Assembly: GCF_020745735.1 (NCBI RefSeq)
Contig: NC_083435.1
Location: 35,818,121-35,882,120, forward strand
Direction: 5' to 3'
DNA from: Hemiscyllium ocellatum
Taxonomy: Eukaryota
Length of the DNA: 64,000 nucleotides
How positions within the stretch are numbered: the stretch's first letter is position 1; the number at the start of each line of letters is the position of its first letter. The notes beneath the pieces are model-generated. The model saw only the letters and a list, made by a program, of their open reading frames with translations. It had not been told where the DNA came from and did not search any database. A program made the position numbers and the translations under genes. Below are positions 2,223 through 43,753 of this stretch, piece by piece.

Positions 2223-4230
2223 CATAAGACCATAAGACCATAAGACATAGGAGTGGAAGTAAGGCCATTTGGCCCATCGAGTCCACTCCGCCATTCAATC
2301 ATGGCTGATGGGCATTTCAACTCCCCTTACCCGCATTCTCCCTGTAGCCCTTAATTCCTCGTGACATCAAGAATCTATCAACCTCTGCCTTGAAGACATT
2401 TAGCGTCCCGGCCTCCATTGCACTCTGCGGCAATGAATTCCACAGGCCCACCACTCTCTGGCTGAAGAAATGTCTCCGCATTTCTGTTCTGAATTGACCC
2501 CCTCTAATTTTAAGGCTGTGTCCACGAGTCCAAGTCTCCTCTCCTAACGGAAACTATTTCCTAGCGTTCACCCTTTCCAAGCCATGTATTATCTTGTACG
2601 TTTCTATTAAGTCTCCCCTCAATCTTCTAAACTCCAATGAATACAATCCCAGGATCCTCAGCTGTTCCTCGTATGTTAGACCAACCATTCCAGGGATCAT
2701 CCGTGTGAATCTCCGCTGGACACGTTCCAGTGCCAGTATGTCCTTCCTGAGGTGTGGGGACCAAAACTGGACACAGTATTCCTAATGGAACCTAACCAGA
2801 GCTTTATAAAGTCTCCATAGCACAACAGTGCTTTTATATTCCAACCCTCTTGAGATATGTGACAACATTGCATTCGCTTTCTTAATCACGGACTCAACCT
2901 GCATGTTTACCTTTAAAGAATCCTTGACTAGTACTCCCAGATCCCTTTGTACTTTGGCTTTACGAATTTTCTCATCGTTTAGAAAGTAGTCTATGCTTTT
3001 ATTCTTTTTGCCAAAGTGCAAGACCTCGCATTTGCTCACGTTGAATTCCATCAGCCATTTCCTGGACCACTCTCCCAAACTGTCTAGATCCTTCTGCAGC
3101 CTCCCCACTTCCTCAGTACTACCTGCCTATCCACCTAACTTCGTATCATCGGCAAACATTGCTAGAATGTCCCTAGTCCCTTCATCCAAATCATTAATAT
3201 ATAATGTGAACAGCTGTGGCCCCAACATTGAACCCTGCAGGACACCGCTCGTCACCGGCTGCCATTCTGAAAAAGAAACTTTTATCCCAACTCTCTGCCT
3301 TCTGTCAGACAGCCAATCCTCAATCCATCCCAGTAGCTCACCTTGAACACCATGGGCCCTCACCTTGCTCAGCAGCCTCCCGTGTGGCACCTTATCAAAG
3401 GCCTTTTGGAAGTCTAGATAGACCACATCCACTGGGTTTCCCTGGTCTAACCCACTTGTCACCTCTTCAAAGAATTCCAACAGGTTTGTCAGGCATGACC
3501 TCCCCTTACTAAATCCATGTTGACTTGTTCTAATCAGACTCTGCTCTTCCAAGAATTTAGAAACCTCATCCTTAATGATGGATTCTAGAATTTTACCAAC
3601 AACCGAGGTTAAACTGATTGGCCTATAATTTTCCATCTTTTGTGTTGATCCTTTCTTGAACAAGAGGGTTACAACAGCAATCTTCCAATCATCCGGGACT
3701 TTCCCTGACTCCAGTGACTCTTGAAAGATGTCAATCAATGCCTCCACTATTTCCTCAGCCACCTCTCTCAGAACTCTAGGATGTATCCCATCGGGGCCAG
3801 GAGATTTATCAATTTTAAGACCTTTTAGCTTTTCTAGCACTTTCTCTTTTGTAACGGCAACCATACTCAACTCAGCCCCCTGACTCCCTTTAATTGTTGG
3901 GATATTACTCATGTCTTCCACTGTGAAAACTGACGCAAAGTACTTGTTAAGTTCTCCTGCTATTTCCTTATCTCCCATTACTAGGCTTCCAGCATCAGTT
4001 TGAAGTGGCCCAATGTCTACTTTTGCCTGTCGTTTGTTTCTTATGTATTGAAAGAAACTTTTACTATCATTTCTAATATTACTGGCTAGCCTACCTTCAT
4101 ATTTGATCCTCTCCTTTCTTATTTCTCTCTTTGTTATCCTCTGTTTGTTTTTGTAACCTTCCCAATCTTCTGATTTCCCACTGCTCTTGGCCACTTTATA
4201 GGATCTCTCTTTTTCTTTAATAGATTTCCA
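2223..4230 (-). mobile_element. CR1-clade LINE, 5'-truncated, relatively young; RT largely intact
   Basis: ORF 3127-4311 has [44 protein letters not shown] and FADD. The frame continues past stops at 3127 and 2782 to the end of ORF2. The 3' tail is (CATAAGAC)x3 on the + strand at 2223-2246. Confidence 0.95.
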
Positions 4231-4699
4231 TGACAATGCAAGAGCAGGAGAGGTGGTGAAATATCCCCAGTGAGGGAGTAAGAAACACAGAGGGCAGGTA
4301 GGGTTAGTCATTTAGGAGGATGAAGTGGGTGAGAGTCAGTGAGAGGTGATGCTATGAATAATGGTGACAGTTGTAAACCATGAGCCTTTTGAGCTTCCTG
4401 TGCAGTGATTATGGAGAAGCAGAGTGAAGGTGGTGACACTTACACCAGCAGCGTAAAGAATATCAGCAACTTTCTTCCAGCACTGCTGTGCCTTTATATG
4501 CTTGCACAAAGTGGAACTGACTTGGGTGACTGCATTAATCCAGGCTCCCTGGATCTGGGGGCAAGGCCTCCTTTATCAGTCAGCAGGATACATCACTGCC
4601 CTCCTCTCTACTGTCTAGTCCCCCAGCAAAGGATTCTGGGTAATCCAAGATGGAGGACAGGAAAGCTTTCTGGCTGTAAGAGCTGCTCCTTTTTGTGAA

Positions 4700-5212: not shown

Positions 5213-5784
5213 AACTCCAGGTCCCTGTCAATGAAGCTTCACATCCTCATTGGAGCAGAACAGTGAGAGGGCAGTCTCAGGCTTCGAGGTTTTGAAGTGT
5301 TGGGGAACTGGATGTTAAACATGACTCCAGCATCGAAGCAACTCAAGGCCCCTGTGCAGTGGTAATTATCTCCGGTAAGATCCGAAAGCCCAAAAGGACA
5401 TCTAACTGTTAATTAATGAACAGCAAAGCATAGAATTGTACAACACAAGTCACCATGGGTCATGGTGGGAAATTCATCAAGAAACCTCCGGAAATCTACA
5501 CACAGCTTCAAAAGGAGAAGCTTCAGCCCCGTAACCTGTTATTGATCATCTCCACTTCCTTATCTCTGAGGTATTTAATTTAGAGATCCCCATCTCTTTT
5601 CATATTTGCTCCTGGATTCATATCGTCCATTCTGTAACACGGGAGAGTATTGATCTCCCCCCTTTATGTATGAATGGACACTGAGACCCCGTGAGATGAC
5701 AGAATTCCCCAACAATTCTCCTGGAGGATCACAACCACCTGACTGGATTCTTACTTGCACAATCTCAAATCTGTCCCCAGGGGA

Positions 5785-6105
5785 GCTGGTGGTAACATGG
5801 TACTGTCACGAGATTTGTAATCCTGAGGTTTAGGTTAATGTTCAGGGGACACATGTTCAACTTAACCAAAGCAGCTGGTGGAATTTAAACTGCAAGAATA
5901 AATCTGGATTCTGAAGCTAATCTTGGTTGTGGTGACCATAGCAATTTTCATTGTTTTAAAAACCTATCTTTTCAGAAAGGAAATGGCCATCCACACCCAG
6001 AGTAGCCAAAATATGATTCCTGACTGACCTTCTTAATGGTCCTTAAACTATCCAGTTGGAATAGTCAGGGATGGAGAGCAAATGCTGCCTTATATGTATA
6101 ATGTC
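5785..6105 (+). mobile_element. Old tRNA-derived SINE with L2-type tail (copy B 41410-41730)
   Basis: Shares GGTGGAATTTAAA and the GGGATGG..AAATGCTG tail with the inverted copy at 10595-10970. Confidence 0.6.
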
Positions 6106-6624: not shown

Positions 6625-8128
6625 CAGTGTGGGGGTTAATGGGGTGGATCATCTACAGAGAGCCCAGTGTGGGGGTTAATGGGGTGGGTCATCTACAGAG
6701 AGCTCAGTGTGGGGGTTAATGGGGTGGGTCATCTACAGAGAGCTCAGTGTGAGGATTAATGGAGTGGGTCATCTACAGAGAGCCCAGTATGGTGGTTATT
6801 GGTTTGGGTCATGTACAGAGAGGCCAGTGTGGGGGTTAATGGGGTGGGTCATGTACAGGGAGCCCAGTGTGGGGGTTAATGGGGTGGGTCATGTACAGAG
6901 AGCCCAGAGTGAGGGTTAATGGAGAGGGTCATGTACAGAGAGCCCAGTGTGGGGATTAATGGAGTAGATTGTGTACAGAGAGCCCAGTGTGGGGATTAAT
7001 GGAGTAGATTATGTACAGAGAGCCCAGTGTGGGGATTAATGGAGTAGATTGTGTACAGAGAGCCCAGTGTGGGTGTTAATGGAGTAGATTGTGTACAGAG
7101 AGCCCAGTGTGGGGATTAATGGAGTAGATTGTGTACAGAGAGCCCAGTGTGGGGATTAATGGAGTAGATTGTGTACAGGGAGCCCAGTGTGGGGGTTAAT
7201 GGGGTGGGTCATGTACAGGGAGCCCAGTGTGGGGGTTAATGGAGAGGGTCATGTACAGAGAGCCCAGTGTGGGGATTAATGGAGTAGATTGTGTACAGAG
7301 AGCCCAGTGTGGGGATTAATGGAGTAGATTATGTACAGAGAGCCCAGTGTTGGGGTTAATGGAGTCGATTGTGTACAGAGAGCCCAGTGTTGGGGTTAAT
7401 GGAGTAGATTGTGTACAGAGAGCCCAGTGTGGGGGTTAATGGAGTAGACTGTGTACAGAGAGCCCAGTGTGGGGGTTAATGGGATGGGTCATGTACAGGG
7501 AGCCCAGTGTGGGGATTAATGGAGTAGATTGTGTACAGAGAGCCCAGTGTGGGTGTTAATGGAGTAGATTATGTACAGAGAGCCCAGTGTGGGGATTAAT
7601 GGAGTAGATTGTGTACAAAGAGCCCAGTGTGGGGATTAATGGAGTAGATTGTGTCCAGAGAGCCTAGTGTGGGTGTTAATGGAGTAGATTGTGTACAGAG
7701 AGCTCAGTGTGGGGGTTAATGGAGTAGATTGTGTACAGACAGCCCAGTGTGGGTGTTAATGGAGTAGATTGTGTACAGACAGCCCAGTGTGGGTGTTAAT
7801 GGAGTAGACTGTGTACAGAGAGCCCAGTGTGGGGGTTAATGGAGTAGACTGTGTACAGAGAGCCCAGTGTGGGGGTTAATGGAGTAGATTGTGTACAGAG
7901 AGCCCAGTGTGGGGGTTAATGGAGTAGATTGTGTACAGAGAGCCCAGTGTGGGGTTTAATGGAGTAGATTGTGTACAGAGAGCCCAGTGTGGGGGTTAAT
8001 GGAGTAGATTGTGTACAGAGAGCCTAGTGTGGGGTTTAATGGAGTAGATTGTGTACAGAGAGCCCAGTGTGGGGTTTAATGGAGTAGACTGTGTACAGAG
8101 AGCCCAGTGTGGGGGTTAATGGAGTGGG
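6625..8128. repeat. 40-bp minisatellite, about 37.5 units (AGCCCAGTGTGGGGGTTAATGGAGTAGATTGTGTACAGAG)
   Basis: Exact 40-bp register with no indels from 6661 to 8100 (36 units), plus partial end units. Confidence 0.98.
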
Positions 8129-9498: not shown

Positions 9499-10361
9499 TT
9501 TTGCAAGGTTTGTGAAGGTTTGTAGCTCAGGTTGAGGTTTAGGGTGTAGGTTTGCTCGCTGAGCTGTAGGTTTGATATCCTGACGTTTCAGTACCTGGCT
9601 ACGTAACATCATCAGTGGCGACCTCCAAGTGAAGCGAAGCTGTTGTCTCCTGCTTTCTATTTATATCTTTCTCCTGGATGGGGTTCCTGGGGTTTGTGGT
9701 GATGTCATTTCCTGTTCGTTTTCTGAGGAGTTGATAGGTGGTATCTAGATCTATGTGTTTGTTTATGGCGTTGTGGTTGGAGTGCCAGGCCTCCAGGAAT
9801 TCTCTGGGATGTCTTTGCTTAGCCCGTCCCAGAATAGATGTGTTGTCCCAGTCGAAATTGTGTTTTTTTTCATCCGTGTGTAGGGATACGAGGGAGAGAG
9901 GGTCATGTTATTTTGTGGCTAGCTGGTGTTCGTGTATCCTGCAGCACAGATGAACTTCAGAAAACAGAGGAGAACCATCTATACAACGTATTCAAGAAGA
10001 ACGGATACTCAAAAAATACAGTGCGCAGATTCCTCAGGAACAAACCACGACAAGCAGACCAAACACAGCCAGAAACCCTAACCACCTTACCTTACTTCAA
10101 AGAAATTTCAGAAATGACAGCCAGACTACTAAGACCCCTCGGAATCCTAGTAGCACACAAACCCACCAACACTCTCAAACAAAAACTAACAAACTTTAAA
10201 GACCCAATACAACCCATGGACAAAACCAATGCCATCTACAAAATTCCATGTAAGGACTGCCACAAACACTACGTAGGACAAACAGGAAGAAAGTTAGCCA
10301 CCAGGATACACGAACACCAGCTAGCCACAAAAAGACACATCCCTCTCTCCCTCATAGCCCT
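9499..10361. mobile_element. Penelope-like element (second family): inverted terminal part (9499-9941, -) joined to sense GIY-YIG body (9939-10361, +)
   Basis: + ORF: YKIPCKDCHKHYVGQTGRKLATRIHEHQLATK. The - part continues RIHEHQLATK*HDPLSLVSLHTDEKKHNFDWDNTSILG..REFLEAWHSNHNAINKHIDLD and carries a hammerhead-like core. Confidence 0.9.
9578..9619 (-). ncRNA. Minimal type I hammerhead ribozyme relic in a Penelope terminus (copy B 45203-45244)
   Basis: Minus strand CCA-CUGAUGA-U-GUUACGUAGCCAGGUACU-GAAAC-GUC-AGG. The core is intact, but helices I and II contain mismatches. Confidence 0.6.
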
Positions 10362-10594
10362 GCGAATCCAGCTCAGATTAGATTTAAGCTGCCACATCCA
10401 GTCCTGATGGCAGTGACTAATTCAGCAACTCACTGGCAGAGGAGACTGTACAAATATCCCATTGTCAATGCTGGGGGAGGCCAGCACATTAGCTGCTGCC
10501 TCCGATGCCTTTGTCAATGCTGGGCAGGCAATGAGTTTCCTTCCTTATTTTACACTTTGATAAGTTTGACTTTACTCATGAGACTATTCAGTGA

Positions 10595-14122: not shown

Positions 14123-14975
14123 TTACAGCAAAGGGATCGTGATCAATTGGGCCAATGGGCTGAGGAGGAGCAGACGGAGTTTAATTTGGATGAAAGCGAA
14201 GTATTGTATTTTGGTAAAACAGACATAGGCCGGACTTGTACAGTTAATGACAGGGCCTTGGGTAATGCTGCTGAATAGAGAGACTGAGGGGCTCAGGTAC
14301 ATAGTTCTTTGAGAGATGCGTCACAGGTAGACAGATTGGTTAAGAAGCCGTGTAACGCACTTGCCTTCATTGCCCAGACTATCGAGTCTCGGAGTTGGGA
14401 TGTCATGTTGAGGTTGTACAGGACATTGGTAAGGACATTTTGGAGTACTGTGTCCTGTTATGTTCACTCTGCTTTGGGAGGGATATTATTAAGTTGCAGA
14501 GGATTCAGATAATGATTTATCAGGAAGTTGCAGGAGTGGCGGGTTTGAATTATAAGGATAGGCTGGATAGGCTGGGATGTCTTTTTACTGGAGCGTCGGA
14601 AGGTAAAGGGAGACTTTATAAAGGTTTATAAAATCATGAGGGACGTAGATAAAGTGAATAGCCTTTAGATGGGCGTGTTCAAAAGTAGGGTGCATATTTT
14701 AAGGTGAGAGGAGGAAGATTTAGAAGGGACCTGAAGGACAACTTTTTCACCAGCGCAGGGTTTATGTGTGGAATGAGCTACCAGAGGAAGTGGTAAATGC
14801 AGGTGCAGCTACAGCATTGAAGAGACATTTGGACAGGTACATGAATGGGAAAGGTTTGGAGGGCTATAGGCCAAATGCAGGCAAGTGGGACTAGTTAGTT
14901 CGAGAAACTTGGTTGGCATGGCCGAGTTGGATGGAAGGGTCATTTTCCATGCTCTCTCACTGCCTGACTCTCTGT
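14123..14975 (+). mobile_element. CR1 3' about 850 bp inserted in L2 (copy B 49748-50600)
   Basis: LQQRDRDQLGQWAEE.., IESRSWDVMLRLYRTLVR and the 3' UTR. Confidence 0.85.
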
Positions 14976-15860: not shown

Positions 15861-16152
15861 TGGGGGAAATGAAAAAAAGGAGAAAAAGATAGTGCCAGCT
15901 TCGGTACAAGTATCGAGGTACAAATCTTGCACAGTGAATCAAAACAGTGCAGCTACACAGTAAAATGGAATGTAAGTGAGCGGTGAACAGTGAAGAAGCC
16001 CAGAATTATGAGAAATGACCATGAGAGCTGAAGTCCCAGTCCATGCCCACAGACTCCACAACACGAGTTCATGCTGCCTCCACGTGCCGGACTCCATCCA
16101 GGACTCACAGCAACGGCGCTCCAGGAATCGCCCATTCGCTCCACTCCGTGCC

Positions 16153-16870
16153 AGAACACAGCCCGTACTCACTCCATCCCGGGACACGGCCTGTGCTCAC
16201 TCCATCCCGGGACACGGCCCGTGCTCACTCCATCCCGGGACACGGCCCGTGCTCACTCCATCCCGGGACACGGCCTGTACTCACTCCATCCCGGGACACG
16301 GCTCGTGCTCACTCTGTCTTGGGACACAGCCCGTGCTCACTCCATCCCGGGACACGGCCTGTACTCACTCTGTCCCCGGGACACGGCCCATGCTCACTCT
16401 GTCCCCAGGACACGGCCCATACTCACTCCATCCCAGGACATGGCCCGTTCTCACTCTAGCCCTGGACACGGCCCGTGTTCACTCCATCTCGGGACACGGC
16501 CATTGCACACTCCCCCCCACCCCCGGGACATGGCCCATGCTCACTCCGCCCCGGGACACGGCCCGTGCTCACTCCGCCCCAGGACACGGCCCGTGCTCAC
16601 TCCGCCCCGGGACACGGCCCGTGCTCACTCCGCCCCGGGACACGGCCCGTGCTCACTCCGCCCCGGGACACGGCCCGTGCTCACTCCGCCCCGGGACACG
16701 GCCCGTGCTCACTCCGCCCTGGGACACGGCCCGTGCTCACTCCGCCCTGGGACACGGCCCGTGCTCACTCCGCCCCGGGACACGGCCCGTGCTCACTCCG
16801 CCCTGGGACACGGCCTGTGCTCACTGCACCCTGGGACACAGCCTGTGCTCACTCTGCCCCGGGATACGGC
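16153..16870. repeat. 28-bp GC/CpG-rich minisatellite, about 25 units (CACGGCCCGTGCTCACTCCGCCCCGGGA)
   Basis: 28-bp periodicity is visible. Left units carry CCATCCC and right units CCGCCCC. Confidence 0.97.
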
Positions 16871-16884
16871 CTGCCTGCTTTTTT

Positions 16885-22019: not shown

Positions 22020-23070
22020 ATTTATGTTGATAAATCATCAGGACTGAATGATTTTGCATCCAAGGTTTCTGATGGAAGACAGTAGAAATTGCAGAGGCTC
22101 CGATCAGTATTTCTCAATCTCTACAAAGACATTGAGGTGCCAGAGGATTGGGGAATTGTAAATGTTTCTCTAGAAGCCCAGAGATTCAGAATGGTTATGG
22201 TGTAGAAGGAGGCCCTTCAGCCCATCCTGTTTGCAATGCCTCCCTGTTCAGTCTAACTTATCTCCTGCCTTTTTCCCATATCTCTGCACATTATTTCCAT
22301 TCAAACCATCCGATACCCTCTTGTCTGTCTCAATTAATCCCGTCTCCACCATACTTTTAAAAGTGCATTCCATTCCCTCACGATTTACGGTGTGTAATTA
22401 CTTTACTTATCTCATTTTTGCTTCTTTTTCAAAATCACTTTAAAACTGGGCACTCTGGGTCTTTATTTATATGTGTGTGTGAAAACAGATTCTCCCTACT
22501 CATTCTATTCAGACCACTCTTTTGGAATACTGTGTACAATTCTGGTCACCCATTTATAGGAAGGATGTTGTTAAACTTGAGAGAGTGTAGAAAAATTTTA
22601 CAAGGAAGTTGCCAGGACTGGAGGGTTAGGCCTATCAGGACAGGCTGAATAGACTGGGGCTGTTTTCCCTGGAGCATCAGAGACTGAGGGGTGACCTGAT
22701 AGAGGTTTATAAAAACATGAGGAGAATTGATAGAATGAACAGCCAAGGTCTTTTTCCTTGGCTGGGGGAGTGCAAAACCAGAGGGCATAGGTTTGAGGTG
22801 AGAGAGGAAAGACGTAAAAAGGATCTGAGGGGTGATATTTTCAAGCAGAGGGTGGTGCATGTCTGAAGTGAGCCACCAGAGGAAGTGGAGGAAGCAAGTA
22901 AATTTAGAACATTTAAAAGGCATCTGTATGGTTGGATGAATGAGAAGGAGTTAGAGGGATACGGGCCAACTGCTAGCAAATGGGAGTAGGTCAGATTGGG
23001 CCGTCTGGTTGGTGTGGATGAGTTGGACCGAAGGATCTGTTTCCATGCTGTACAGCTCTATGACCCTATG
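22020..23070. mobile_element. Cluster of CR1 fragments: + 22020-22160, - 22180-22500, + 22500-23070 (copy B 57645-58695)
   Basis: CR1 ORF2 remnants; the final piece ends CTCTATGACCCTATG. Confidence 0.75.
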
Positions 23071-27920: not shown

Positions 27921-27933
27921 NNNNNNNNNNNNN
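27921..27933. other. Assembly gap, exactly 13 N
   Basis: A run of 13 n cuts a Penelope RT region that continues uninterrupted in copy B (63553 onward). Confidence 0.99.
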
Positions 27934-27959
27934 TTTACTCAATCTCATTCCAACTTCTC

Positions 27960-28330
27960 CTTTACAATAGCTTGAGAGACAGCAATATCTCATCTTTCTA
28001 TTTGCAACCTTCCAGACTCAACATCAAATTCAACAATTTTACTTCCAAATTGCCGACACCATTGTTTTTGGGTGATGTGTTTTGGCGATGTTTCTGTGAT
28101 TCCTATCAATATGCCATTGAAATACACCTTTACATGTCCCACTGCTATTTCCTCCTGCCTTGCTCTCACCATCACTTCACCATTTCGCCTTCCGCTCTCT
28201 GCCGTCTTCTTTCTGCATTGCCTCCTGTTCTTATCGCACCACCGCATTTTTCCCTGCGCTCCACAAACATAGAATCTGCAACATTTTTGGCCTTTTCCCA
28301 GTTCTGATCAAAGTTCACAGAACTGAAACG
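27960..28330 (+). mobile_element. Highly decayed Penelope 3' fragment
   Basis: ..LQPSRLNIKFNNF.. remnant and a CUGAUCA..GAAAC hammerhead relic at about 28303-28330. Confidence 0.4.
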
Positions 28331-28579
28331 TTTTGATTTTGTGAAAGTGCGATCCATTGGATGTGATCGACACTGACAGAATGCCGCAGTTCCGTTTGTC
28401 GCCAGGAGGTGGCAGCCCTGTACCATCAGCGTCACCTGCGGGATAATGTTTTGCTTGCAGTACCAGACACCACCAGCAGGTGGACATATTGCACCGACTG
28501 GGACAAAACTGTTCAGATCCATTCAATGTGACAGGAGGCACAGAGGGGAAAATTGTCTAGAAATACCGCACCTTAAAAT

Positions 28580-29000
28580 CCAATGGTCTTACCGTCCCTG
28601 AATCCACCAGGACCAACATCCTTGGGTTACCATTGACCAGAAACACCACTGGACTCAGCACATACACACAGAGGCTACAAGAACAGTCAGAGACTCGGAA
28701 TACTGCGGTGAGTAAGTCACCTCCTGACTCTCCAACACCTCTCCATTACCTACAAGGCACAAGCCAGGAGCCCTCTTACCTGGATAGGTGCAGCTCCAAC
28801 AACACTCAAGGAGCTTGACACCTTCCAAACCCACGGCCACTTCCATCAGGAAGGAGATGGGCAGCAGATATACAGGAACACCACCACCCTCAAATTCCCC
28901 TCCAAGCCATTCACCATCCTGATTTGGAAATATATTACTGTTCATTCACTGTCACTGGGAGAACATTCTGGAATTCCCACCCTCAGGGCACTCACCCCAT
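28580..29000 (+). mobile_element. L2-type LINE 3' fragments
   Basis: Homologous to 13850-14100 and 15020-15100 (CACCATCCTGATTTGGAAATAT shared). Confidence 0.75.
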
Positions 29001-29156
29001 TTGGATGATGTTTTGATCTCTGCCCTTGGCTTCCTGCCCATAAATTCTGTTTCCTGTGCTTCCCTCTCACTCCACCTGACCAAGGGCTGATGCTCCAAAC
29101 ACCAGTGATTCCGAAGGAACCGATTGGACTCTAACCTGGTGTCATGGGAATTCTGA

Positions 29157-29402
29157 CAGTAACCTGGGACACACCAGGTCTATCATTAACCAGGGTCAGT
29201 AACCTGGGATACACCCGGTCTATCACTAACCTGGATCAGGAACCTGGGACATAACTGGTCTATCACTAACCAGGGTCAGTAACTGGGACACACCCGATCT
29301 ATCACTAACCAGGGTCAGTAACCTGGGATACACCCGGTCTATCACTAACCAGGGTCAGTAACCTGGGACACACCCGGTCTATCACTAACCAGAGTCTGTA
29401 AC
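29157..29402. repeat. Second 40-bp minisatellite, 6 units (CAGTAACCTGGGACACACCCGGTCTATCACTAACCAGGGT)
   Basis: Units start at 29157, 29197, 29237, 29277 (39 bp), 29316 and 29356. Confidence 0.95.
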
Positions 29403-29564
29403 GTGCGACCCTGTTTTACTCGTGGTTCTGCCCAAACCATTGTCTCCCTGACCTTTGTCCTGGAACAGTAACCGAGGAGACAGCAGGTTTATCTCAGAGA
29501 AAGATAAAGTGGAATAAAGTCAATGTGAACATAAGGAAACGAAGTCTCGGACACCACACATCAC

Positions 29565-29850
29565 ATGACAGGCGAGACAAAGACACACACGAGAATCCTT
29601 AGAGACACGGCACTCGAACCAGAACTCCATCAATAAACACATCCATTTCGATCCTATCGACCTACCCTTGAATAAAAGAACCGGAAATGACATCACCCAC
29701 CTTATAAACAGAGAGACAGGACATCCCACCGGGGCTTCACCGGAGACTCTCACTGAGGGTGTGACTGCATATGCTGATGAAACATCTGAAAACAAGCCTT
29801 CCAGCTCAGTGAGCTAACTTACAGACTTATCATCAAACTGAGCTACAAAT
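29565..29850 (+). mobile_element. Penelope-like 3' end (relative of the 9499 family)
   Basis: QARQRHTRESLETRHSNQNSINKHIHFDP.. and a terminal AGCTACAAATCTTCTCAAAA. Confidence 0.7.
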
Positions 29851-30267
29851 CTTCTCAAAAACCGCTAAGGTGCTGAAGTGTTCCTTTTTGCCAGAGAACA
29901 TCTGGAGAGAGATATTGAGGAGAAACTCCTGCCCAGGGAACACCTGGAGTGAGGAATTCAGGATAACCTGGGGCAGGTCTATGGTTCACCACCAGAACCA
30001 GGAAAGGTGTTGGGTGAATGAATCCAGATTGAAATGAAGAGAAACAGGAATATTTGGGAGGATGAAGTGTGAGACCATGGGGGACAGTCACTGTGTGAAC
30101 AGTCTCTCTGTCAAACAGGGGGATGGACAATCCCGAGCAGGATCCCCACTGTCCTTCACTGAGCTTTTTAATCAGCCCTTTATACACGGCCAGTAGGATG
30201 TTGGTGTCTGAGATAACCCGGCCTATTCAACCAAGAGGGCATCACAGCTGGGCCTAGGCTGGGTAGT

Positions 30268-31070
30268 GAGTTTTATTCAGATAAAGTTGATGTGTTGAAT
30301 TTTGGGAAAGCAAATCTTAGCAGGGCTTATACACTTAATGGTAAAGTCCTAGGGAGTGTTGCTGAACAATGAGACCTTGGACTGCAGGTTCATAGCTCCT
30401 TGAAAGTGGAGTCGCAGGTCGATAAGTTAGTGAAGGTGTTTGGTATGCTTTCCTTTTTTGGTCAGATTATTGAGTACAGGAGTTGGGAGATCATGTTGCA
30501 ACTGTACAGGACATTGGTTCAGCCATTTTCAGAAGATTGCATACAATTCTGGTCTCCTTCCTTTCATGAGGATGTTGTGAAACTTGAATGATTTACAAGG
30601 ATGTTGCCAGGGTTGGAGGATCTGAGCTATAGGGAGAGGCTGAACAGGCTGGGGATGTTTTCCCTGGAGTGTCGGAGGCTGAGGGGTGACCTTATCGAGC
30701 TTTATAAAATCATGTGGGACATGGATAGGATAAATAGGCAAAGTATTTTTCCTAGGATGGAGGAGCCAGAACTAGAGGACATGGTTTTAAGGTGAGAGGG
30801 AAAAGGAATAAAAGAGACGTAAGGGGCAATGTTTTCCCACAGAGGGTGGTGCGTGTATGGAATGAGCTGCCAGAGGATGTGGTGGAGGCTGGTACAATTG
30901 CAACATTTAAAAGGCACCTGGATGGGTATATGAATAGGAAGGGTTTATAGAGGGATATGGGCCAAGTGCTGGCAAATGGGATGAGATTAGTTTGGGATAT
31001 CTGGTCAGTGTGGACAGCTTGGACTGACAGGTCTGTTTCCGTGTTGTACATCTCTATAACTCTATGACTG
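30268..31070 (+). mobile_element. CR1 3' about 800 bp
   Basis: IEYRSWEIMLQLYRTLVQP..MLPGLEDLSYRERLNRLG..; tail CTATAACTCTATGACT. Confidence 0.9.
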
Positions 31071-31310
31071 ACTAAGTGTCTAAGTGACTCTGATTCCTTG
31101 CTTATTCCCTGTTCTGAGAGGCTGCAGCAACTAATTCTGACCCAGTTGAATCTGGCTTTGTTTATAATATCAGACAGGACTCTGACAGTGTGATGATGTG
31201 GTGAATTATTGGTGCTTGTCACTGTCACTGTACGGATGGGACCTCACTTTGTACTGAGAGGAATGTGGATGAGTGTTTGTTAAAATGTCCCTTTAATTTT
31301 TGTTTTCCAG

Positions 31311-31545
31311 ACAGCAATTTCAGGTACTGAAGATTTTCCTGTTGTAACAAAAGTTGCCATGGTGAATGGAGTTAGAGTTAATTATCATGACTGTAATATT
31401 CAATAAACACTGGTCAGGCAGCAATTCATGGCAGAATCTTCCAATCAGTCAGACTGGAAGTAAATCACAGCATTTGGAAACAATCATTCAAACTTCACCA
31501 AGAAATATCTGTGTACAATAAAGAAGAGCATGAACCAGACACCAG
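31311..31545 (+). pseudogene. MHC class I-like heavy chain, alpha1-domain exon remnant
   Basis: Translates TAISGTEDFPVVTKVAMVNGVRVNYHDCNIQ*TLVRQQFMAESSNQSDWK*ITAFGNNHSNFTKKYLCTIKKSMNQTP(G), matching the class I alpha1 pattern including the terminal NQT glycosylation site. TAA stops at 31404 and 31461. The phase-1 end is followed by GGGAGA (a probable mutated GT donor). Polypyrimidine-CAG at 31291-31310. Confidence 0.85.
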
Positions 31546-32191
31546 GGGAGAGAATTGATTCAGAAACTCCCCCTGGTCTGTCCGGTGTTCCCAGTCCCAT
31601 AGCCAGACTCCACACTGGAATACCATGAGTTATGGACACAGGGCAAGTTCTTCTGTTCTCTCTCTTTTTCCTGAAGAAGATATTTGGAAAGTTGTGATGC
31701 ACTGAGGAAGGTCAGGAGGTGGGTTTGGGATCAAGTGGGCACCTGGTTGGATGGTTAAGATTGTCCAGGGATGAGCAGCTTGTTGGATAATTCCTGTCAT
31801 CCCACTGGATCTCAGTGTCTATTCATATAGCAAAGCTGGGAATGGGAACTCGATCTTAACTAGGATTACGGAATGGGCAGTGTGGATCCAGGAGGCAGTG
31901 TGAACAGGGAATAGAAATCTCTGTAGGAAGTGTTTCTGAGAGATAAAGAAGGGGAGATGATCAAGGACAGAGTCAGTCCCTCGTGGAGAGAGACCGTGAG
32001 GGGAATCAATCGGCAGAAATGAATGTGCCGGAGTGTTTGCTGGAGAGGATGGCTCCCTGGTCCTGTTCAAACTGCCAGGGCTCAATCAAGATAATTAATT
32101 CCACACCTGCGCGGTCCAGCTCTAACTGACCAATCAGCTGATGAAACCGATGGGTTGGTGAAGGGGGGGGCTCCTGTCTGACCAACCTCAC

Positions 32192-32343
32192 TGACTGTGA
32201 GGGGGAGCTGACTGACACGGTGTGGAACAGGTTGGCTTTGGATCTGGTCCATATGGAGTTCCAGACGTTCATTGCTAAGGTTCCACACCACACAATTATT
32301 GACCATAAGAAGACTGTCGGAAATTGGAGGGGGTCAGGCAATG
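32192..32343 (-). pseudogene. Possible connecting-peptide/transmembrane exon of the class I-like gene
   Basis: Acceptor TTCTGATTTATTTCAG is phase-compatible with alpha3: (A)LPDPLQFPTVFLWSIIVWCGTLAMNVWNSIWTRSK, a hydrophobic run followed by basic residues. The donor (GTGAGG at 32191) is uncertain. Confidence 0.3.
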
Positions 32344-32723
32344 CTGAAATAAATCAGAACAATAGGGTTCCATTCAGCCGACACAGCCAAGAATCTCAGA
32401 ATTGACTCTCAACTAACGCGACTTGGAACATACACTACAATGACCACAATGTTCAAATTTTCATTATTTGTGAATAATTCAGAGATGGATCTACTTTTTA
32501 AAAAAATTCATCTTACTTCTAAACTCTTATCATGTGTGTTGCGTCCCGATTTTCTCTTGTAGTTAATATTAAATATACTCAGTTTTTATTAATGCTGGAT
32601 ACTCTGATTACATCAGAAAAATATCAGTACATTCAGGTGATTAACCAGGGCTGAATGCAGCCACACACAGACACAGACACAAGGGCAGATACAGATGCAC
32701 AAACATTGGGCCCAGTCCCTTAC

Positions 32724-33001
32724 CCCACTGATAGAGCTTGCCCTCTGCCAGGCTGCTGTGTTCAATTTGACAGGAGTATTGATCCTCATTCCCAGCATTG
32801 ATCTCAATCTCTTTCTGGATCTGATGGGTCCCATCGTGTTCGGTCGAACCCCTGAGGATTGGGTCTCAGACATGACCTCTCCATTCCTTAGCCAGGTCAC
32901 CTCGATGTCTACAGGATAAAACCCAGTGACCAGGCAGGAGAGAGTGAGTGGCTTGTCCTGACCATTGGGCTCCCTCCTGGAGATGAACACTTCAGGCTGA
33001 A
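32724..33001 (-). pseudogene. MHC class I-like heavy chain, alpha3 (Ig C1-set) exon with a 1-nt frameshift
   Basis: AG/GT-bounded, 278 nt, 112-nt intron from alpha2. VQPEVFISRREPNGQDKPLTLSCLVTGFYPVDIEVTWLRNGEVMSETQSSGVRPN then, after restoring 1 nt near 32838, HDGTHQIQKEIEINAGNEDQYSCQIEHSSLAEGKLYQW. Both Cys, the FYP motif, the Trp and the YxCxxxH motif are present. Confidence 0.93.
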
Positions 33002-33113
33002 CTGTGATGGGAAAGGGTGAAAACACAAACAACAGACAGACACTGAATGGAATGGGAGAACGGTTTCATAGATCAGTGAGGTTAGATCAGAACATTGAAA
33101 CTAAAATACGTAC

Positions 33114-33375
33114 CTTTCCTTGTGAAATATTCCTTTCCAGCTTTCAAGTATTGCTTCAAACATTGAACAGACACACCCAGCAAATATCGTTCCCAGTATT
33201 TGTTCCAAGATTCATCCGAATCTCATTTCTTCTTCGCCTTTTGTGCAAAGTGATTTGCGGCAACCCATCTCATCCTGTCTGGTTCTAAACTAATGTAGTC
33301 CTTTCTATCAAATCCAAATTGTATTGACCTCATCACTGACCTCAATGGAACATATCCATTGCAGAGTGTGAATTC
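33114..33375 (-). pseudogene. MHC class I-like heavy chain, alpha2-domain exon remnant
   Basis: Bounded by AG (33377-33376) and GT (33113-33112). Translates GIHTLQWICSIEVSDE..[frameshift]..QFGFDRKDYISLEPDRMRWVAANHFAQKAKKK*DSDESWNKYWERYLLGVSVQCLKQYLKAGKEYFTRK. Length is 262 nt (not a multiple of 3), with TGA at 33225-33223 in place of the conserved Trp147. Confidence 0.92.
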
Positions 33376-33966
33376 CTGTCAGTGACCAAGCAGGGATCAA
33401 TCATCAGTAATTAATAGATAATCACCCACTGTCTGATCAGAGAGGAAAGGGGGTGCAGTATCAGACTGAAATAAAGAGACCAGGAGTTGGTGGGGATTTG
33501 TTGCAAATGACCATAATCACAAAACACCGATAATGTTGGTTTGACATTGAGACAAAGCCTGGATCTTACAGTAAGCCAGGTTTGCATTCCATCTTGTACC
33601 CAATCTCCACTGCACAATAAGGAGGAGAAATGTGTGCCAGTTCTCTGACAGAGAGTGCAGTACATTTGTTCTGTTTGGTCTTTGGAGGTAAGATGTACTT
33701 GTGGCTAAGGTGAGGCCCTTCAGGAGGTAGATGCATTAATCAGGCATTGTAGGGTCAATGATGAGACACATTCACTATCAAACTACTCTTCACTTACAGC
33801 TCACCCCTTGACCAACAATATACAGCCTCAAACAGGAAACCTGGCTAGCATGGATGAGTTGGGCTGAAGGGTCTGTTCACTGTATGATTCTTTGAATCTA
33901 TGAGCAATCATGTCCATTCTATTGAACAGGACAATTTCACTTCTTGGAAGCAGAACAGATATTGAT

Positions 33967-34260
33967 ACGGTGGCTCAGTGGTTAGCACTGCTGCCTCACA
34001 GCACCAGGAACCCAGGTTAGATTCCAGCCTTGCGTGACTGGATGGAGTTTGTACATTCTCTCCGTGTCTGTGTGGGTTTCCTCCGGGTGCTCCGGTTTCC
34101 TCCCACAGTCCAAAGATGTGCAGGTCAGGTGAATTGTGCAGAGTGTTAGGTGCATTAGTCAGAGGGAAATGGGACTGGGTGGTTTACACTTCGGAGGGTC
34201 GGTATGGACTTATTGGGCTGAAGGGCCTGTTTCCACATTGTAGGGAATCTAATCTAAAAA
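33967..34260 (+). mobile_element. HE1-type SINE
   Basis: ACGGTGGCTCAGTGGTTAGCACTGCTGCCTCACAG head and AATCTAATCTAAAAAAA tail. Confidence 0.88.
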
Positions 34261-34510
34261 AACCAGTGTTGCTTGTAGTCACCAATTCTCAAATGTATTA
34301 TAAAGTTCTCATGACTACACAAGGTCTCTGAGCTGTTTCCCTCTCACAGTGAACTGTAAGTAACTGTAACATGTGCACTGACATTCACTGCTGTCTTTCA
34401 TGGTGACAGATGGGATGGGAGCTGGGTTGTAACATGGAGGACGTATTCATCCCATGGTTATAATATCCCAATGTTTGTGAGTGCCATAACTTATGTTGGG
34501 TGTAATGTGT

Positions 34511-35972
34511 CACAGCTGAAAATGTGTTGCTGGTTAAAGCACAGCAGGTCAGGCAGCATCTCAGGAATAGGAAATTCGACGTTTTGAGCATAAGCCCTTT
34601 ATCAGGAATGAGGAGAGTTTGCCAAGCAGGCTAAGATAAAAGGTAGTGAGGAGGGACTTGGGGGAGGGGCGATGGAGGTGGGATAGGTGGAAGGAGGTCA
34701 AGGTGAGGGTGATAGGCCGGAGTGGGGTGGGGGCGGAGAGGTCAGGAAGAGGATTGCAGGTTAGGAGGGCGGTGCTGAGTTGAGGGAACCGACTGAGACA
34801 AGGTGGGGGGAGGGGAAATGAGGAAACTGGAGAAATCTGAATTCATTCCTTGTGGTTGGAGGGTTCCCAGGCGGAAGATGAGGCGCTCTTCCTCCAGCCG
34901 TCGTGTAGTTGTGTTCTGCTGGTGGAGGAGTCCAAGGACCTGCATGTCCTCGGTGGAGTGGGAGGGAGAGTTAAAGTGTTGAGCCACGGGGTGATTGGGT
35001 TGGTTGGTCCGGGTGTCCCAGAGGTGTTCCCTGAAGCGTTCCGCAAGTAAGCGGCCTGTCTCCCCAATATAGAGGAGGCCACATCGGGTGCAGCGGATGC
35101 AATAGATGATGTGTGTGGAGGTACAGGTGAACTTGTGGCGGATATGGAAGGATCCCTTGGGGCCTTGGAGGAAGTGAGTGTGGAGGTGTGGGCGCAAGTT
35201 TTACATTTCCTGCGGTTGCAGGGGAAGGTGCCGGGGGTGGAGGTTGGGTTGGTGGGGGGTGTGGACCTGACGAGGGAGTCACAAAGGGAGTGGTCCTTGC
35301 GGAACGCTGATAGGGGAGGGGAGGGAAATATATCCTTGGTGGTGGGGTCCGTTTGGAGGTGGCGGAAATGACGGCGGATGATACGTTGTATGCGGAGGTT
35401 GGTGGGGTGGTAGGTGAGAAACAGTGGGGTTCTGTCTTGGTGGCGGTTGGAGGAGCGGGGCTCAAGGGCAGAGGAGCGGGAAGTGGAGGAGATGCGGTGG
35501 AGGGCATCATCGATCACGTCTGGGGGGAATCTGCAGTCCTTGAAGACGGAGGCCATCTGGGCTGTGCGGTGTTGGAACTGGTCCTCCTGGGAGCAGATGC
35601 GGTGGAGACGAAGGAATTGGGAATATGGGATGGAGTTTTTACAGGGGGCAGGGTGGGAGGAGGTGTAGTCCAGGTAGCTGTGGGAGTCAGTCGGTTTATA
35701 GTAGATGTCTGTGTTGAGTCGGTCACCCGAGATAGAGATGGAAAGGTCTAGGAAGGGGAGGGAGGAGTCTGAGACAGTCCAGGTGAATTTGAGGTCGGGA
35801 TGGAAGGTGTTAGTAAAGTTGATGAACTGTTCAACCTCCTCGTGGGAGCACGAGGCAGCGCTGATACAGTGATGAACGGTTCAACCTCCTCGTGGGAGCA
35901 CGAGGCAGCGCCGATACAGTGATGAACTGTTCAACCTCCTCGTGGGAGGATGAACTGTTCAACTTCAACCTC
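34511..35972 (-). mobile_element. Penelope-like element, RT C-terminus + GIY-YIG endonuclease + terminal region
   Basis: ORFs 34843-35556 and 34742-35197 give GTFPCNRRKCKTC and IYCIRCTRCGLLYIGETGRLLAERFREHL (GIY-YIG), with one frameshift. Decayed hammerhead-like motif near 34577-34610. Confidence 0.9.
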
Positions 35973-39855: not shown

Positions 39856-42249
39856 TGACAATGCAAGAGCAGGAGAGGTGGTGAAATATCCCCAGTGAGG
39901 GAGTAAGAAACACAGAGGGCAGGTAGGGTTAGTCATTTAGGAGGATGAAGTGGGTGAGAGTCAGTGAGAGGTGATGCTATGAATAATGGTGACAGTTGTA
40001 AACCATGAGCCTTTTGAGCTTCCTGTGCAGTGATTATGGAGAAGCAGAGTGAAGGTGGTGACACTTACACCAGCAGCGTAAAGAATATCAGCAACTTTCT
40101 TCCAGCACTGCTGTGCCTTTATATGCTTGCACAAAGTGGAACTGACTTGGGTGACTGCATTAATCCAGGCTCCCTGGATCTGGGGGCAAGGCCTCCTTTA
40201 TCAGTCAGCAGGATACATCACTGCCCTCCTCTCTACTGTCTAGTCCCCCAGCAAAGGATTCTGGGTAATCCAAGATGGAGGACAGGAAAGCTTTCTGGCT
40301 GTAAGAGCTGCTCCTTTTTGTGAAGTATTTTAGGTGCTGGAGGTGATTTTCTCGAATTCCAGGAGCAGCAATTACTGTTTTATTTGCTGTTGCATTGTTT
40401 TGGAACTTTGGGGGGAAAAAAAGTCAAAACAACAGCAGTTTTTAAAGGGAGAAGAACAGACAAAGGAAGCACATGGTGAGGACATTGCAGGGGGGAGAGA
40501 GAGAGAGAGAGAGAGAACCTGCACAGTACTGCCTTTGCTGAATTTGAATTCATGTGTCGCTGGATATCGGAGTGCGTCTGGGAAAATTAACAAACAGTGA
40601 ATTTCACAACTAAACTTGGAGCAACCTGTTAGCTGCCAGAGGATGTGGTGGAGGCTGGTACAATTGCAACACTTAAGAGGCATTTGAATGGGTATATGAA
40701 TAGGAAGGGTTTGGAGGAATATGGGCCGGGTGCTGGTAGGTGGGACTAGATTGGGTTGGGCTATCTGGTCGGCATGGATGGGTTGGACCGAAGGGTCTGT
40801 TTCTGTGCAGTACATCTCTATGACTCCATGACTCTCTAACTCCAGGTCCCTGTCAATGAAGCTTCACATCCTCATTGGAGCAGAACAGTGAGAGGGCAGT
40901 CTCAGGCTTCGAGGTTTTGAAGTGTTGGGGAACTGGATGTTAAACATGACTCCAGCATCGAAGCAACTCAAGGCCCCTGTGCAGTGGTAATTATCTCCGG
41001 TAAGATCCGAAAGCCCAAAAGGACATCTAACTGTTAATTAATGAACAGCAAAGCATAGAATTGTACAACACAAGTCACCATGGGTCATGGTGGGAAATTC
41101 ATCAAGAAACCTCCGGAAATCTACACACAGCTTCAAAAGGAGAAGCTTCAGCCCCGTAACCTGTTATTGATCATCTCCACTTCCTTATCTCTGAGGTATT
41201 TAATTTAGAGATCCCCATCTCTTTTCATATTTGCTCCTGGATTCATATCGTCCATTCTGTAACACGGGAGAGTATTGATCTCCCCCCTTTATGTATGAAT
41301 GGACACTGAGACCCCGTGAGATGACAGAATTCCCCAACAATTCTCCTGGAGGATCACAACCACCTGACTGGATTCTTACTTGCACAATCTCAAATCTGTC
41401 CCCAGGGGAGCTGGTGGTAACATGGTACTGTCACGAGATTTGTAATCCTGAGGTTTAGGTTAATGTTCAGGGGACACATGTTCAACTTAACCAAAGCAGC
41501 TGGTGGAATTTAAACTGCAAGAATAAATCTGGATTCTGAAGCTAATCTTGGTTGTGGTGACCATAGCAATTTTCATTGTTTTAAAAACCTATCTTTTCAG
41601 AAAGGAAATGGCCATCCACACCCAGAGTAGCCAAAATATGATTCCTGACTGACCTTCTTAATGGTCCTTAAACTATCCAGTTGGAATAGTCAGGGATGGA
41701 GAGCAAATGCTGCCTTATATGTATAATGTCTAAAGAGATGTAAATCTCCTGATCTTCATTCCCAGTGATCATTATTCTGAAAGATTGAACATAGTTATTG
41801 GTAAGGATAAGGCTGGTCCTCAGGTGAAAGGGCGAAACTGGGTAAAGGATAATTCCAAACGGATTTGGCAGGAATTGGAGAAATTAGATTGCGGGGGACT
41901 GTTTGATGGTCAATCCACATCTGACATGTGGGAAGACTTTTTAAGGCCAGTTGATCAGAATTCAGGACCAGCCTGTTCCTGTGAGGATGAAAAATAAGGA
42001 TGACGAGATTTGGGAATCCTGGATGATAAGAAATATTGAAAGATTAGTTAAAAATGAGAAGCAAAGTATGTTACGTTTAAGAAACTGAAATCAGACAAAG
42101 CAATTGAGAAGATAAAGGAAGTAAAGAAGTATTTAAATAAGGAATTAAGAGCAATAAAATGGGCCATGAGGTGTCCTTGGCAATCAGGATTTAGGAAAAT
42201 CCCAAAGCATTTTATACATATATTAGAAAGTGAGCAACTACGGAAAGGG

Positions 42250-43753
42250 CAGTGTGGGGGTTAATGGGGTGGATCATCTACAGAGAGCCCAGTGTGGGGG
42301 TTAATGGGGTGGGTCATCTACAGAGAGCTCAGTGTGGGGGTTAATGGGGTGGGTCATCTACAGAGAGCTCAGTGTGAGGATTAATGGAGTGGGTCATCTA
42401 CAGAGAGCCCAGTATGGTGGTTATTGGTTTGGGTCATGTACAGAGAGGCCAGTGTGGGGGTTAATGGGGTGGGTCATGTACAGGGAGCCCAGTGTGGGGG
42501 TTAATGGGGTGGGTCATGTACAGAGAGCCCAGAGTGAGGGTTAATGGAGAGGGTCATGTACAGAGAGCCCAGTGTGGGGATTAATGGAGTAGATTGTGTA
42601 CAGAGAGCCCAGTGTGGGGATTAATGGAGTAGATTATGTACAGAGAGCCCAGTGTGGGGATTAATGGAGTAGATTGTGTACAGAGAGCCCAGTGTGGGTG
42701 TTAATGGAGTAGATTGTGTACAGAGAGCCCAGTGTGGGGATTAATGGAGTAGATTGTGTACAGAGAGCCCAGTGTGGGGATTAATGGAGTAGATTGTGTA
42801 CAGGGAGCCCAGTGTGGGGGTTAATGGGGTGGGTCATGTACAGGGAGCCCAGTGTGGGGGTTAATGGAGAGGGTCATGTACAGAGAGCCCAGTGTGGGGA
42901 TTAATGGAGTAGATTGTGTACAGAGAGCCCAGTGTGGGGATTAATGGAGTAGATTATGTACAGAGAGCCCAGTGTTGGGGTTAATGGAGTCGATTGTGTA
43001 CAGAGAGCCCAGTGTTGGGGTTAATGGAGTAGATTGTGTACAGAGAGCCCAGTGTGGGGGTTAATGGAGTAGAGTGTGTACAGAGAGCCCAGTGTGGGGG
43101 TTAATGGGATGGGTCATGTACAGGGAGCCCAGTGTGGGGATTAATGGAGTAGATTGTGTACAGAGAGCCCAGTGTGGGTGTTAATGGAGTAGATTATGTA
43201 CAGAGAGCCCAGTGTGGGGATTAATGGAGTAGATTGTGTACAGAGAGCCCAGTGTGGGGATTAATGGAGTAGATTGTGTACAGAGAGCCTAGTGTGGGTG
43301 TTAATGGAGTAGATTGTGTACAGAGAGCTCAGTGTGGGGGTTAATGGAGTAGATTGTGTACAGACAGCCCAGTGTGGGTGTTAATGGAGTAGATTGTGTA
43401 CAGAGAGCCCAGTGTGGGTGTTAATGGAGTAGACTGTGTACAGAGAGCCCAGTGTGGGGGTTAATGGAGTAGACTGTGTACAGAGAGCCCAGTGTGGGGG
43501 TTAATGGAGTAGATTGTGTACAGAGAGCCCAGTGTGGGGGTTAATGGAGTAGATTGTGTACAGAGAGCCCAGTGTGGGGTTTAATGGAGTAGATTGTGTA
43601 CAGAGAGCCCAGTGTGGGGGTTAATGGAGTAGATTGTGTACAGAGAGCCTAGTGTGGGGTTTAATGGAGTAGATTGTGTACAGAGAGCCCAGTGTGGGGT
43701 TTAATGGAGTAGACTGTGTACAGAGAGCCCAGTGTGGGGGTTAATGGAGTGGG
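42250..43753. repeat. 40-bp minisatellite, copy B
   Basis: Same unit count as copy A, with a few substitutions. Confidence 0.98.

Follow-up and report, generated by a model that had tools for sequence, protein, structure and literature searches.

The stretch analysed here comprises 64,000 nucleotides of the Hemiscyllium ocellatum genome (contig NC_083435.1, positions 35,818,121 to 35,882,120 of the forward strand; hereafter the window), and it contains a dead, unannotated copy of a gene from the multicopy family of non-classical class I genes of the major histocompatibility complex (MHC) in sharks. As such, the copy is a real but ordinary pseudogene. The pattern of its breaks is unusual for a pseudogene: exons 1 to 5, i.e., leader, alpha1, alpha2, alpha3 and the connecting-peptide/transmembrane (TM) exon, are kept once each, in three blocks distributed over both strands. 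The alpha1 exon, with a flipped block on either side, differs in direction from all other exons. On balance we favour the reading that one gene was scrambled here, either by two inversions flanking alpha1 or by one event with four breaks.

Four pieces of the gene had been listed in a preliminary description of the stretch, alpha1 on the plus strand followed by TM, alpha3 and alpha2 on the minus strand. All of them were found where it had placed them, give or take a few bases, and the exon phases named in it proved correct in the border check. Borders, acceptors and phases of alpha1, alpha2 and alpha3 are those of a canonical class I gene (Table 1). The alpha1 exon starts in phase 1 (G|AC AGC AAT) and was most similar to alpha1 of unit 1 of the Mustelus protein P0162 (59% identity, 101 bits); its pieces gave no match to Pfam. 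Its frame is shifted by the loss of 26 nt at its start and interrupted by TAA at 31404-6 and 31461-3, and its donor GT reads GG (31546-7). The alpha2 exon was 77% identical to that of the Stegostoma protein P0184 (148 bits), and is damaged by a 14-nt deletion near 33336 and by a change from TGG to TGA in the codon of a conserved Trp at 33225-33223. It could be searched only piecewise, and the pieces matched positions 114-146 and 150-177 of PF00129 (MHC_I) with 20.4 and 13.5 bits, respectively, against a cut-off of 28.3. In alpha3 a single C was lost near 32838, causing a frameshift. The first 52 residues of this exon matched PF07654 (C1-set) with 42.2 bits against a cut-off of 21, and in a search of the full library gave single-domain matches in shark class I proteins at 87-98% identity.

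The fifth exon is more decayed. It follows alpha3 at a distance of 550 nt, in a frame that differs by 1 nt, and charged residues interrupt its hydrophobic core. It reads EPPPSPTHRFHQLIGQ...IILIEPW, where the family has ...RFHLAILIG...IIIWKKPW, and its alignment pairs EPPPSPTHRFHQLIGQLELDRAGVELIILIEPW with ...RFHLAILIGLVTAVSSIVGIIIWKKPW of P0184. When the family tails were compared by tblastn, P0184 and P0188 were 31-33% identical to it and shared the motifs RFH..LIG..II..PW, at E values of 0.05-0.13. From this resemblance we regard 32173-32063 as the probable TM exon. Another candidate, 32344-32230, was discarded since it is conserved intron 4, as judged by its homology to intron 4 of contig L002.

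Three stops and four frameshifting indels were counted over the gene, the donors are gone after alpha1 and after the TM exon, and the exons do not follow each other on one strand, leader, alpha2, alpha3 and TM being on the minus strand and alpha1 on the plus strand. Such a gene is neither spliceable nor translatable. The inversion suggested in the preliminary description had been held to have killed the gene; because each exon carries lesions of its own, the cause of death cannot be assigned to it. Nor does the NQTxGIHTLQ junction that would be rebuilt between alpha1 and alpha2 carry weight as an argument for a single gene, because all family members share the same exon phases. A scan of both strands of the 64 kb with the exons of the window and about 110 alpha1, alpha2 and alpha3 domains of the family gave no further alpha1 or alpha2, and the earlier observation that there is no other alpha1 upstream of alpha2 and no plus-strand alpha2 was thus borne out. 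An apparent plus-strand remnant of alpha2 just after alpha1 ('LHTGIP') had nucleotide similarity no better than shuffled sequences. No cytoplasmic exon was found in 31546-32062, and the open reading frames (ORFs) between and beside the exons gave nothing in Pfam.

The 5' end of the gene was found 1.3 kb to the left of alpha1, and on the minus strand. The key to it is P0043, a white-shark isoform whose sequence takes in the end of the leader exon and runs on via intron 1 to alpha1. Residues 2-39 of P0043 matched 30005-29893 on the minus strand, with 70% amino-acid identity and an E value of 1e-8 over residues 13-39 and a weaker match over residues 2-13. Residues 42-135 matched 31287-31541 on the plus strand (E 8e-19), and here residues 42-50 (TVPLMFFFIE) align with NVPLIFVFQ. 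There was no second copy of the 5' intron-1 match in the window. The two matches, on opposite strands, are complementary and do not overlap. Their ends come to within about 10-15 nt of each other on the intron, as fits a single break in it. The clade of ten rows that holds alpha1 of the window includes P0043 and P0193 as well (support 98/93), and the flipped 5' block and the block with alpha1 therefore indicate a gene of one kind. Immediately before the intron-1 homology there is a leader-like exon with a hydrophobic run, ...ILP(x)IFLFLFISIWIHSP, whose end is the 'SP' of the family. Its peptide resembles the family leaders weakly (best z 2.5-3.0, for P0026, P0173 and P0176), and in a blind scan for leader exons 30012-30078 was not the top match; we consider it a probable leader exon. 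When the intron-1 piece was read in another frame (29940-30046, minus strand), it gave ...CFSSFQSGFIHPTPFLVLVVNHRPAPGYPEFLTPGV, which is faintly like a leader end plus alpha1 start with the motif PG.PEF (E 0.2-2). The resemblance may be due to chance, or intron 1 may contain an ancient pseudo-alpha1.

Three blocks can thus be outlined, named A, B and C in Table 1. They keep the order of an intact plus-strand gene, while the order inside A and C is reversed. The preliminary description had proposed a single inversion of the block from alpha2 to TM, which does account for the tail-to-tail arrangement of alpha1 against alpha2, alpha3 and TM and for their complementary exon content. Its idea of one rearranged gene remains the better reading. 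As the only rearrangement, however, that inversion is very improbable, since promoter, leader and the 5' part of intron 1 are also flipped, and the minus-strand position of this 5' block calls for another break, 25 nt upstream of alpha1. At least four breakpoints are needed instead of two. One- and two-inversion paths were enumerated from an intact gene in either orientation, and only two non-overlapping inversions of the flanks or a four-break event fitted the layout. Flipping alpha1 alone in place was rejected, as it would leave A and C on the wrong sides. In the history we propose, each flank of exon 2 would have been turned round where it stood, either in a small inversion of its own or in a single four-break event common to both. 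The left inverted block would have measured about 0.56 kb before the insertion of a long interspersed nuclear element (LINE), and the right one about 1.9 kb, with the inner breakpoints in introns 1 and 2. After the rearrangement the gene would have decayed by frameshifts, stops and loss of splice sites, and the LINE would have been inserted in block A.

Table 1. Position and strand of the gene pieces, blocks, candidate breakpoints and adjacent repeats in the window.
Feature	Position	Strand	Remarks
Block A: leader exon with promoter, and intron 1 up to its nt ~119	30184-29893	-	
Block B: alpha1, with the final ~25 nt of intron 1 before it and the start of intron 2 after it	31287 to ~31600	+	
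Block C: TM, alpha3, alpha2, last ~96 nt of intron 2	32063-33472	-	
TATAAA, putative promoter element	30184-30179	-	precedes the ATG of the leader-like exon by ~100 nt; read from sequence
Leader exon (exon 1), probable	30012-30078	-	ATG 30078-76 in ccATGg context; one internal frameshift
5' part of intron 1	29893-30011	-	~119 nt; match to P0043
3' end of intron 1	31287-31310	+	~25 nt; polypyrimidine tract, acceptor AG
Alpha1 exon (exon 2)	31311-31545	+	235 nt, usually ~261; acceptor AG 31309-10
Interval of the inner right breakpoint, where inverted sequence from downstream of TM follows the start of intron 2	31546-32062		no exon found
Connecting-peptide/TM exon (exon 5), decayed, probable	32173-32063	-	acceptor AG 32175-4; no GT donor
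Intron 4	32174-32723	-	32256-32331 76% identical to intron 4 of contig L002
Alpha3 exon (exon 4)	33001-32724	-	278 nt
Alpha2 exon (exon 3)	33375-33114	-	262 nt, against 276; acceptor AG 33377-6, donor GT 33113-2
3' part of intron 2	33376-33472	-	homology to intron 2 of a relative stops near 33472, candidate outer right breakpoint
Penelope-like element fragment	29546-29863	-	64% identity to the GIY-YIG ORF-bearing element at 9509-9851
3' part of LINE, between leader block and alpha1 block	30249-31069	+	matches copies at 14156-14900 and 22597-23070

The origin of all three blocks from one gene is favoured by several observations. Firstly, each of exons 1-5 occurs once in 64 kb, all of them within 4.3 kb (3.5 kb without the LINE) and in the gene's own left-to-right order. 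Secondly, family-invariant residues, judged by eye from invariant alignment columns, were lost at similar shares in alpha1 (1/8) and alpha2 (4/29). In addition, block A has a TATAAA, an ATG and the hydrophobic leader-like run that ends in SP just before the intron-1 homology. On the side of intron 2, contig L001 from JGI was 85.6% identical over alpha2, intron 3 and alpha3, and upstream of alpha2 its homology goes on for another 96 nt or so, as far as about 33472; in this part, local alignment to L001 positions 230-308 scored 49-53, against a mean of 23 (standard deviation 3) for shuffled sequences. The interval 31546-32062 resembled neither the alpha2 exon nor the sequence that precedes it, and it did not match L001 either, which holds the last 305 nt of a longer intron 2.

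Alternatively, the blocks could come from two genes, as the preliminary description had also considered. Blocks A and B would then belong to one gene, in which the leader was flipped and everything after alpha1 was deleted, while block C would be a headless neighbouring minus-strand paralogue of the P0184 type, the whole being tail-to-tail debris of the gene cluster. Domain trees of about 95 family proteins give this some ground. Alpha1 of the window was sister to unit 1 of P0162 (support 100/96) in a Carcharhiniform/Lamniform clade, whereas alpha2 was sister to Stegostoma P0184 (91/85), to which the TM exon is also nearest. The window alpha1 was only 48% identical to alpha1 of P0184, and the rank correlation between alpha1 and alpha2 of the window was 0.50, compared with a median of 0.77 in intact genes. 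Yet at least three events would be required, among them two independent truncations both ending in intron 2, and the exact single occurrence of every exon would be left unexplained. The discordance is not unusual either, as 16-21% of the intact family genes show an equal or stronger one, and P0184 is, like P0180, itself a mosaic. Separate grouping of alpha1 and of alpha2/alpha3 had been named in the preliminary description as one observation that would tell against a single gene. Nominally the exons do group apart, but this is not decisive in a family where intact genes do the same, and approximately unbiased (AU) tests did not reject placing the exons of the window with each other's partners (p 0.13-0.26). 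All relatives of both exons belong to one lineage. The trees and AU tests do not separate one gene from two, and from the evidence as a whole we hold the two-gene explanation to be possible but rather doubtful.

Intact genes often have different nearest relatives for alpha1 and alpha2, as seen in P0184, P0180, P0229 and P0207, which points to frequent exon-level recombination in the family. Conceivably, the pseudogene is a failed product of such an exchange of alpha1 exons among paralogues, in which alpha1 would be a mobile cassette set between minisatellite introns that break easily. Introns 1 and 2 of the family each carry a tandem unit of about 39 nt, and the inner breakpoints fall in the same introns; this coincidence, together with the many mosaics among intact members, is the reason for the suggestion, which we nevertheless take to be unlikely.

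Several points weigh against one gene broken at four places. Two separate inversions hugging one exon of 235 nt would be a coincidence. The nearest relatives differ, Mustelus P0162 unit 1 for alpha1 and Stegostoma P0184 for alpha2 and TM; the alpha1 clade is without any orectolobiform gene, and the discordance between alpha1 and alpha2 on informative sites gave a Fisher p of 0.0018. The match of the leader peptide is weak by itself, and the intron-1 evidence comes from a single predicted isoform of white shark, which is assumed to retain intron 1 and not to splice in a distant exon. The split intron speaks directly for the join of A and B only; for the join of B and C we infer that block C came from the same gene. 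Finally, the orientation of the blocks is given by the assembly alone, at a locus 2-5.5 kb from a contig start.

The last point raises an assembly artefact as an explanation, with one or more blocks wrongly oriented in a contig that is part of a probable false duplication of 35.6 kb. The assembly is indeed imperfect here. Positions 1-27920 equal 35627-63553 at 99.90% identity, a repeat of 27.9 kb with a period of 35,626, and its first copy stops exactly at a gap of 13 N (27921-27933), with the next contig starting at 27934. The alignment starts at the first base of the window, so the repeat probably extends further to the left, and it looks like two overlapping contigs or haplotypes and not like a true duplication. 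The locus itself lies within the 7.7 kb that are unique in the window (27934-35626). In this part there were no inverted repeats of at least 25 nt, and therefore there is no fold-back signature of misassembly. The blocks also show independent decay and an insertion of a LINE. Sampled 31-mers of 31250-33960 were present at 83-86% in each of the 8 listed runs (five samples from two studies of the same organism) and at 10-18% in related organisms, in which an orthologous stretch therefore probably exists; k-mers, though, cannot prove order. On the whole we find an artefact very improbable.

The alpha3 exon stands apart by its preservation. Identity by domain was 90-96% to H. ocellatum paralogues for alpha3, at most 77% (Stegostoma P0184) for alpha2, and at most 59% (Mustelus P0162 unit 1) for alpha1; alpha1 reached 48% with the best protein of the same species, alpha2 about 70% and TM about 35%. 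From its nearest paralogue alpha3 differs in 4 of 93 residues, and it is about three times less decayed than the remaining exons. Since it is so much better kept than alpha1, alpha2 and TM, the likeliest explanation is that alpha3 was restored by gene conversion from intact paralogues after the death of the gene. Such a well-preserved exon beside decayed ones would point to gene conversion continuing even into pseudogenes. The frameshift in alpha3 was considered as a sign of orthology with Chiloscyllium P0024 and was dismissed, as the frame of P0024, judged by the protein readings of both, appears to shift about five codons upstream of that in the window. A further decayed immunoglobulin-like exon with a stop (…DWILTCTISNLSPGELVVTWY…) was observed at 5702-5870 on the plus strand, with a copy at 41327-41495; it matched 81 alpha3 queries of the family weakly, with a best E value of 0.036.

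The full-length member P0046 has more than 100 relatives among RefSeq proteins of many shark species, under the name 'class I histocompatibility antigen, F10 alpha chain-like'. Many of them are from Hemiscyllium ocellatum, all on a single contig of 49.3 Mb. Among these proteins some isoforms (P0025, P0026, P0030, P0043, P0155 and P0250) join alpha1 straight to alpha3 (NQTS|VQPEVF) by skipping the alpha2 exon, and some of the latter are misnamed as class II or beta-2-microglobulin-like. A protein search with alpha1 as query gave no candidates. Two scans of metagenomes gave no useful matches. L001 and L002, short contigs from metagenomes, were the only DNA relatives obtained. The family probably represents the UBA lineage of shark class I, an assignment supported by its multicopy, shark-only distribution. 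A UBA gene would be expected in a cluster flanked by c4 and rxrb; no marker genes of these flanks were found within the window. UBA has been described as a multicopy, MHC-linked class I group in a cluster of its own (PMC10751288).

The surroundings of the locus consist mostly of transposon remains, at 3130-4311 (-), 9838-10404 (+), 33790-33915 (+), 33967-34257 (+) and 34745-35197 (-). They include an ORF for a LINE reverse transcriptase, two GIY-YIG ORFs of Penelope-like type, and a LINE tail and a short interspersed nuclear element (SINE) just right of alpha2. Between the end of the Penelope-like fragment in Table 1 and the left end of the intron-1 piece there are about 30 nt. Three minisatellites were recorded. 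The one at 29157-29409 has 6.3 copies of a 40-nt unit; it ends in 'actgtcag|aattc' and was tried as intron 2 of a further gene, a candidate that was rejected with z values of 2.1-2.6, below the best shuffles. Another, at 6625-8125 with a copy at 42250-43750, has 37.5 copies of 40 nt, and its unit is unrelated to that of the former. The third, 25.8 copies of 28 nt at 16142-16871, lies inside an ORF of 374 amino acids with no Pfam match.

For annotation, the fragments described here are, on the favoured reading, not independent genes and are not to be counted as two or three loci. As a compact multi-break rearrangement bracketing a single exon, the locus may also bear on the discordant histories of alpha1 and alpha2 exons in the family. 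It follows the plan of intact shark non-classical (class Ib) genes, i.e., leader, alpha1, alpha2, alpha3 and TM with phase-1 junctions, from which it differs in that it does not work, has every exon broken, and has its exons on both strands. Mammalian MHCs also hold truncated, dead partial class I copies, known in human as HLA class I gene fragments. Like these, the copy in the window is dead and partial and is situated where the MHC is rich in repeats and prone to duplication; alpha3 is often what such copies preserve best. The HLA fragments are usually simple truncations, whereas here exons 1-5 are all kept once and it is their orientation that is scrambled. The locus can also be compared with small complex structural variants, i.e., multi-break inversions with several breakpoints, with which it shares four breakpoints within about 3.6 kb, a kept order, and two of three segments flipped. 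Unlike typical variants of this kind, the event would be old and fixed in a pseudogene, and its mechanism is not readable from the junctions.

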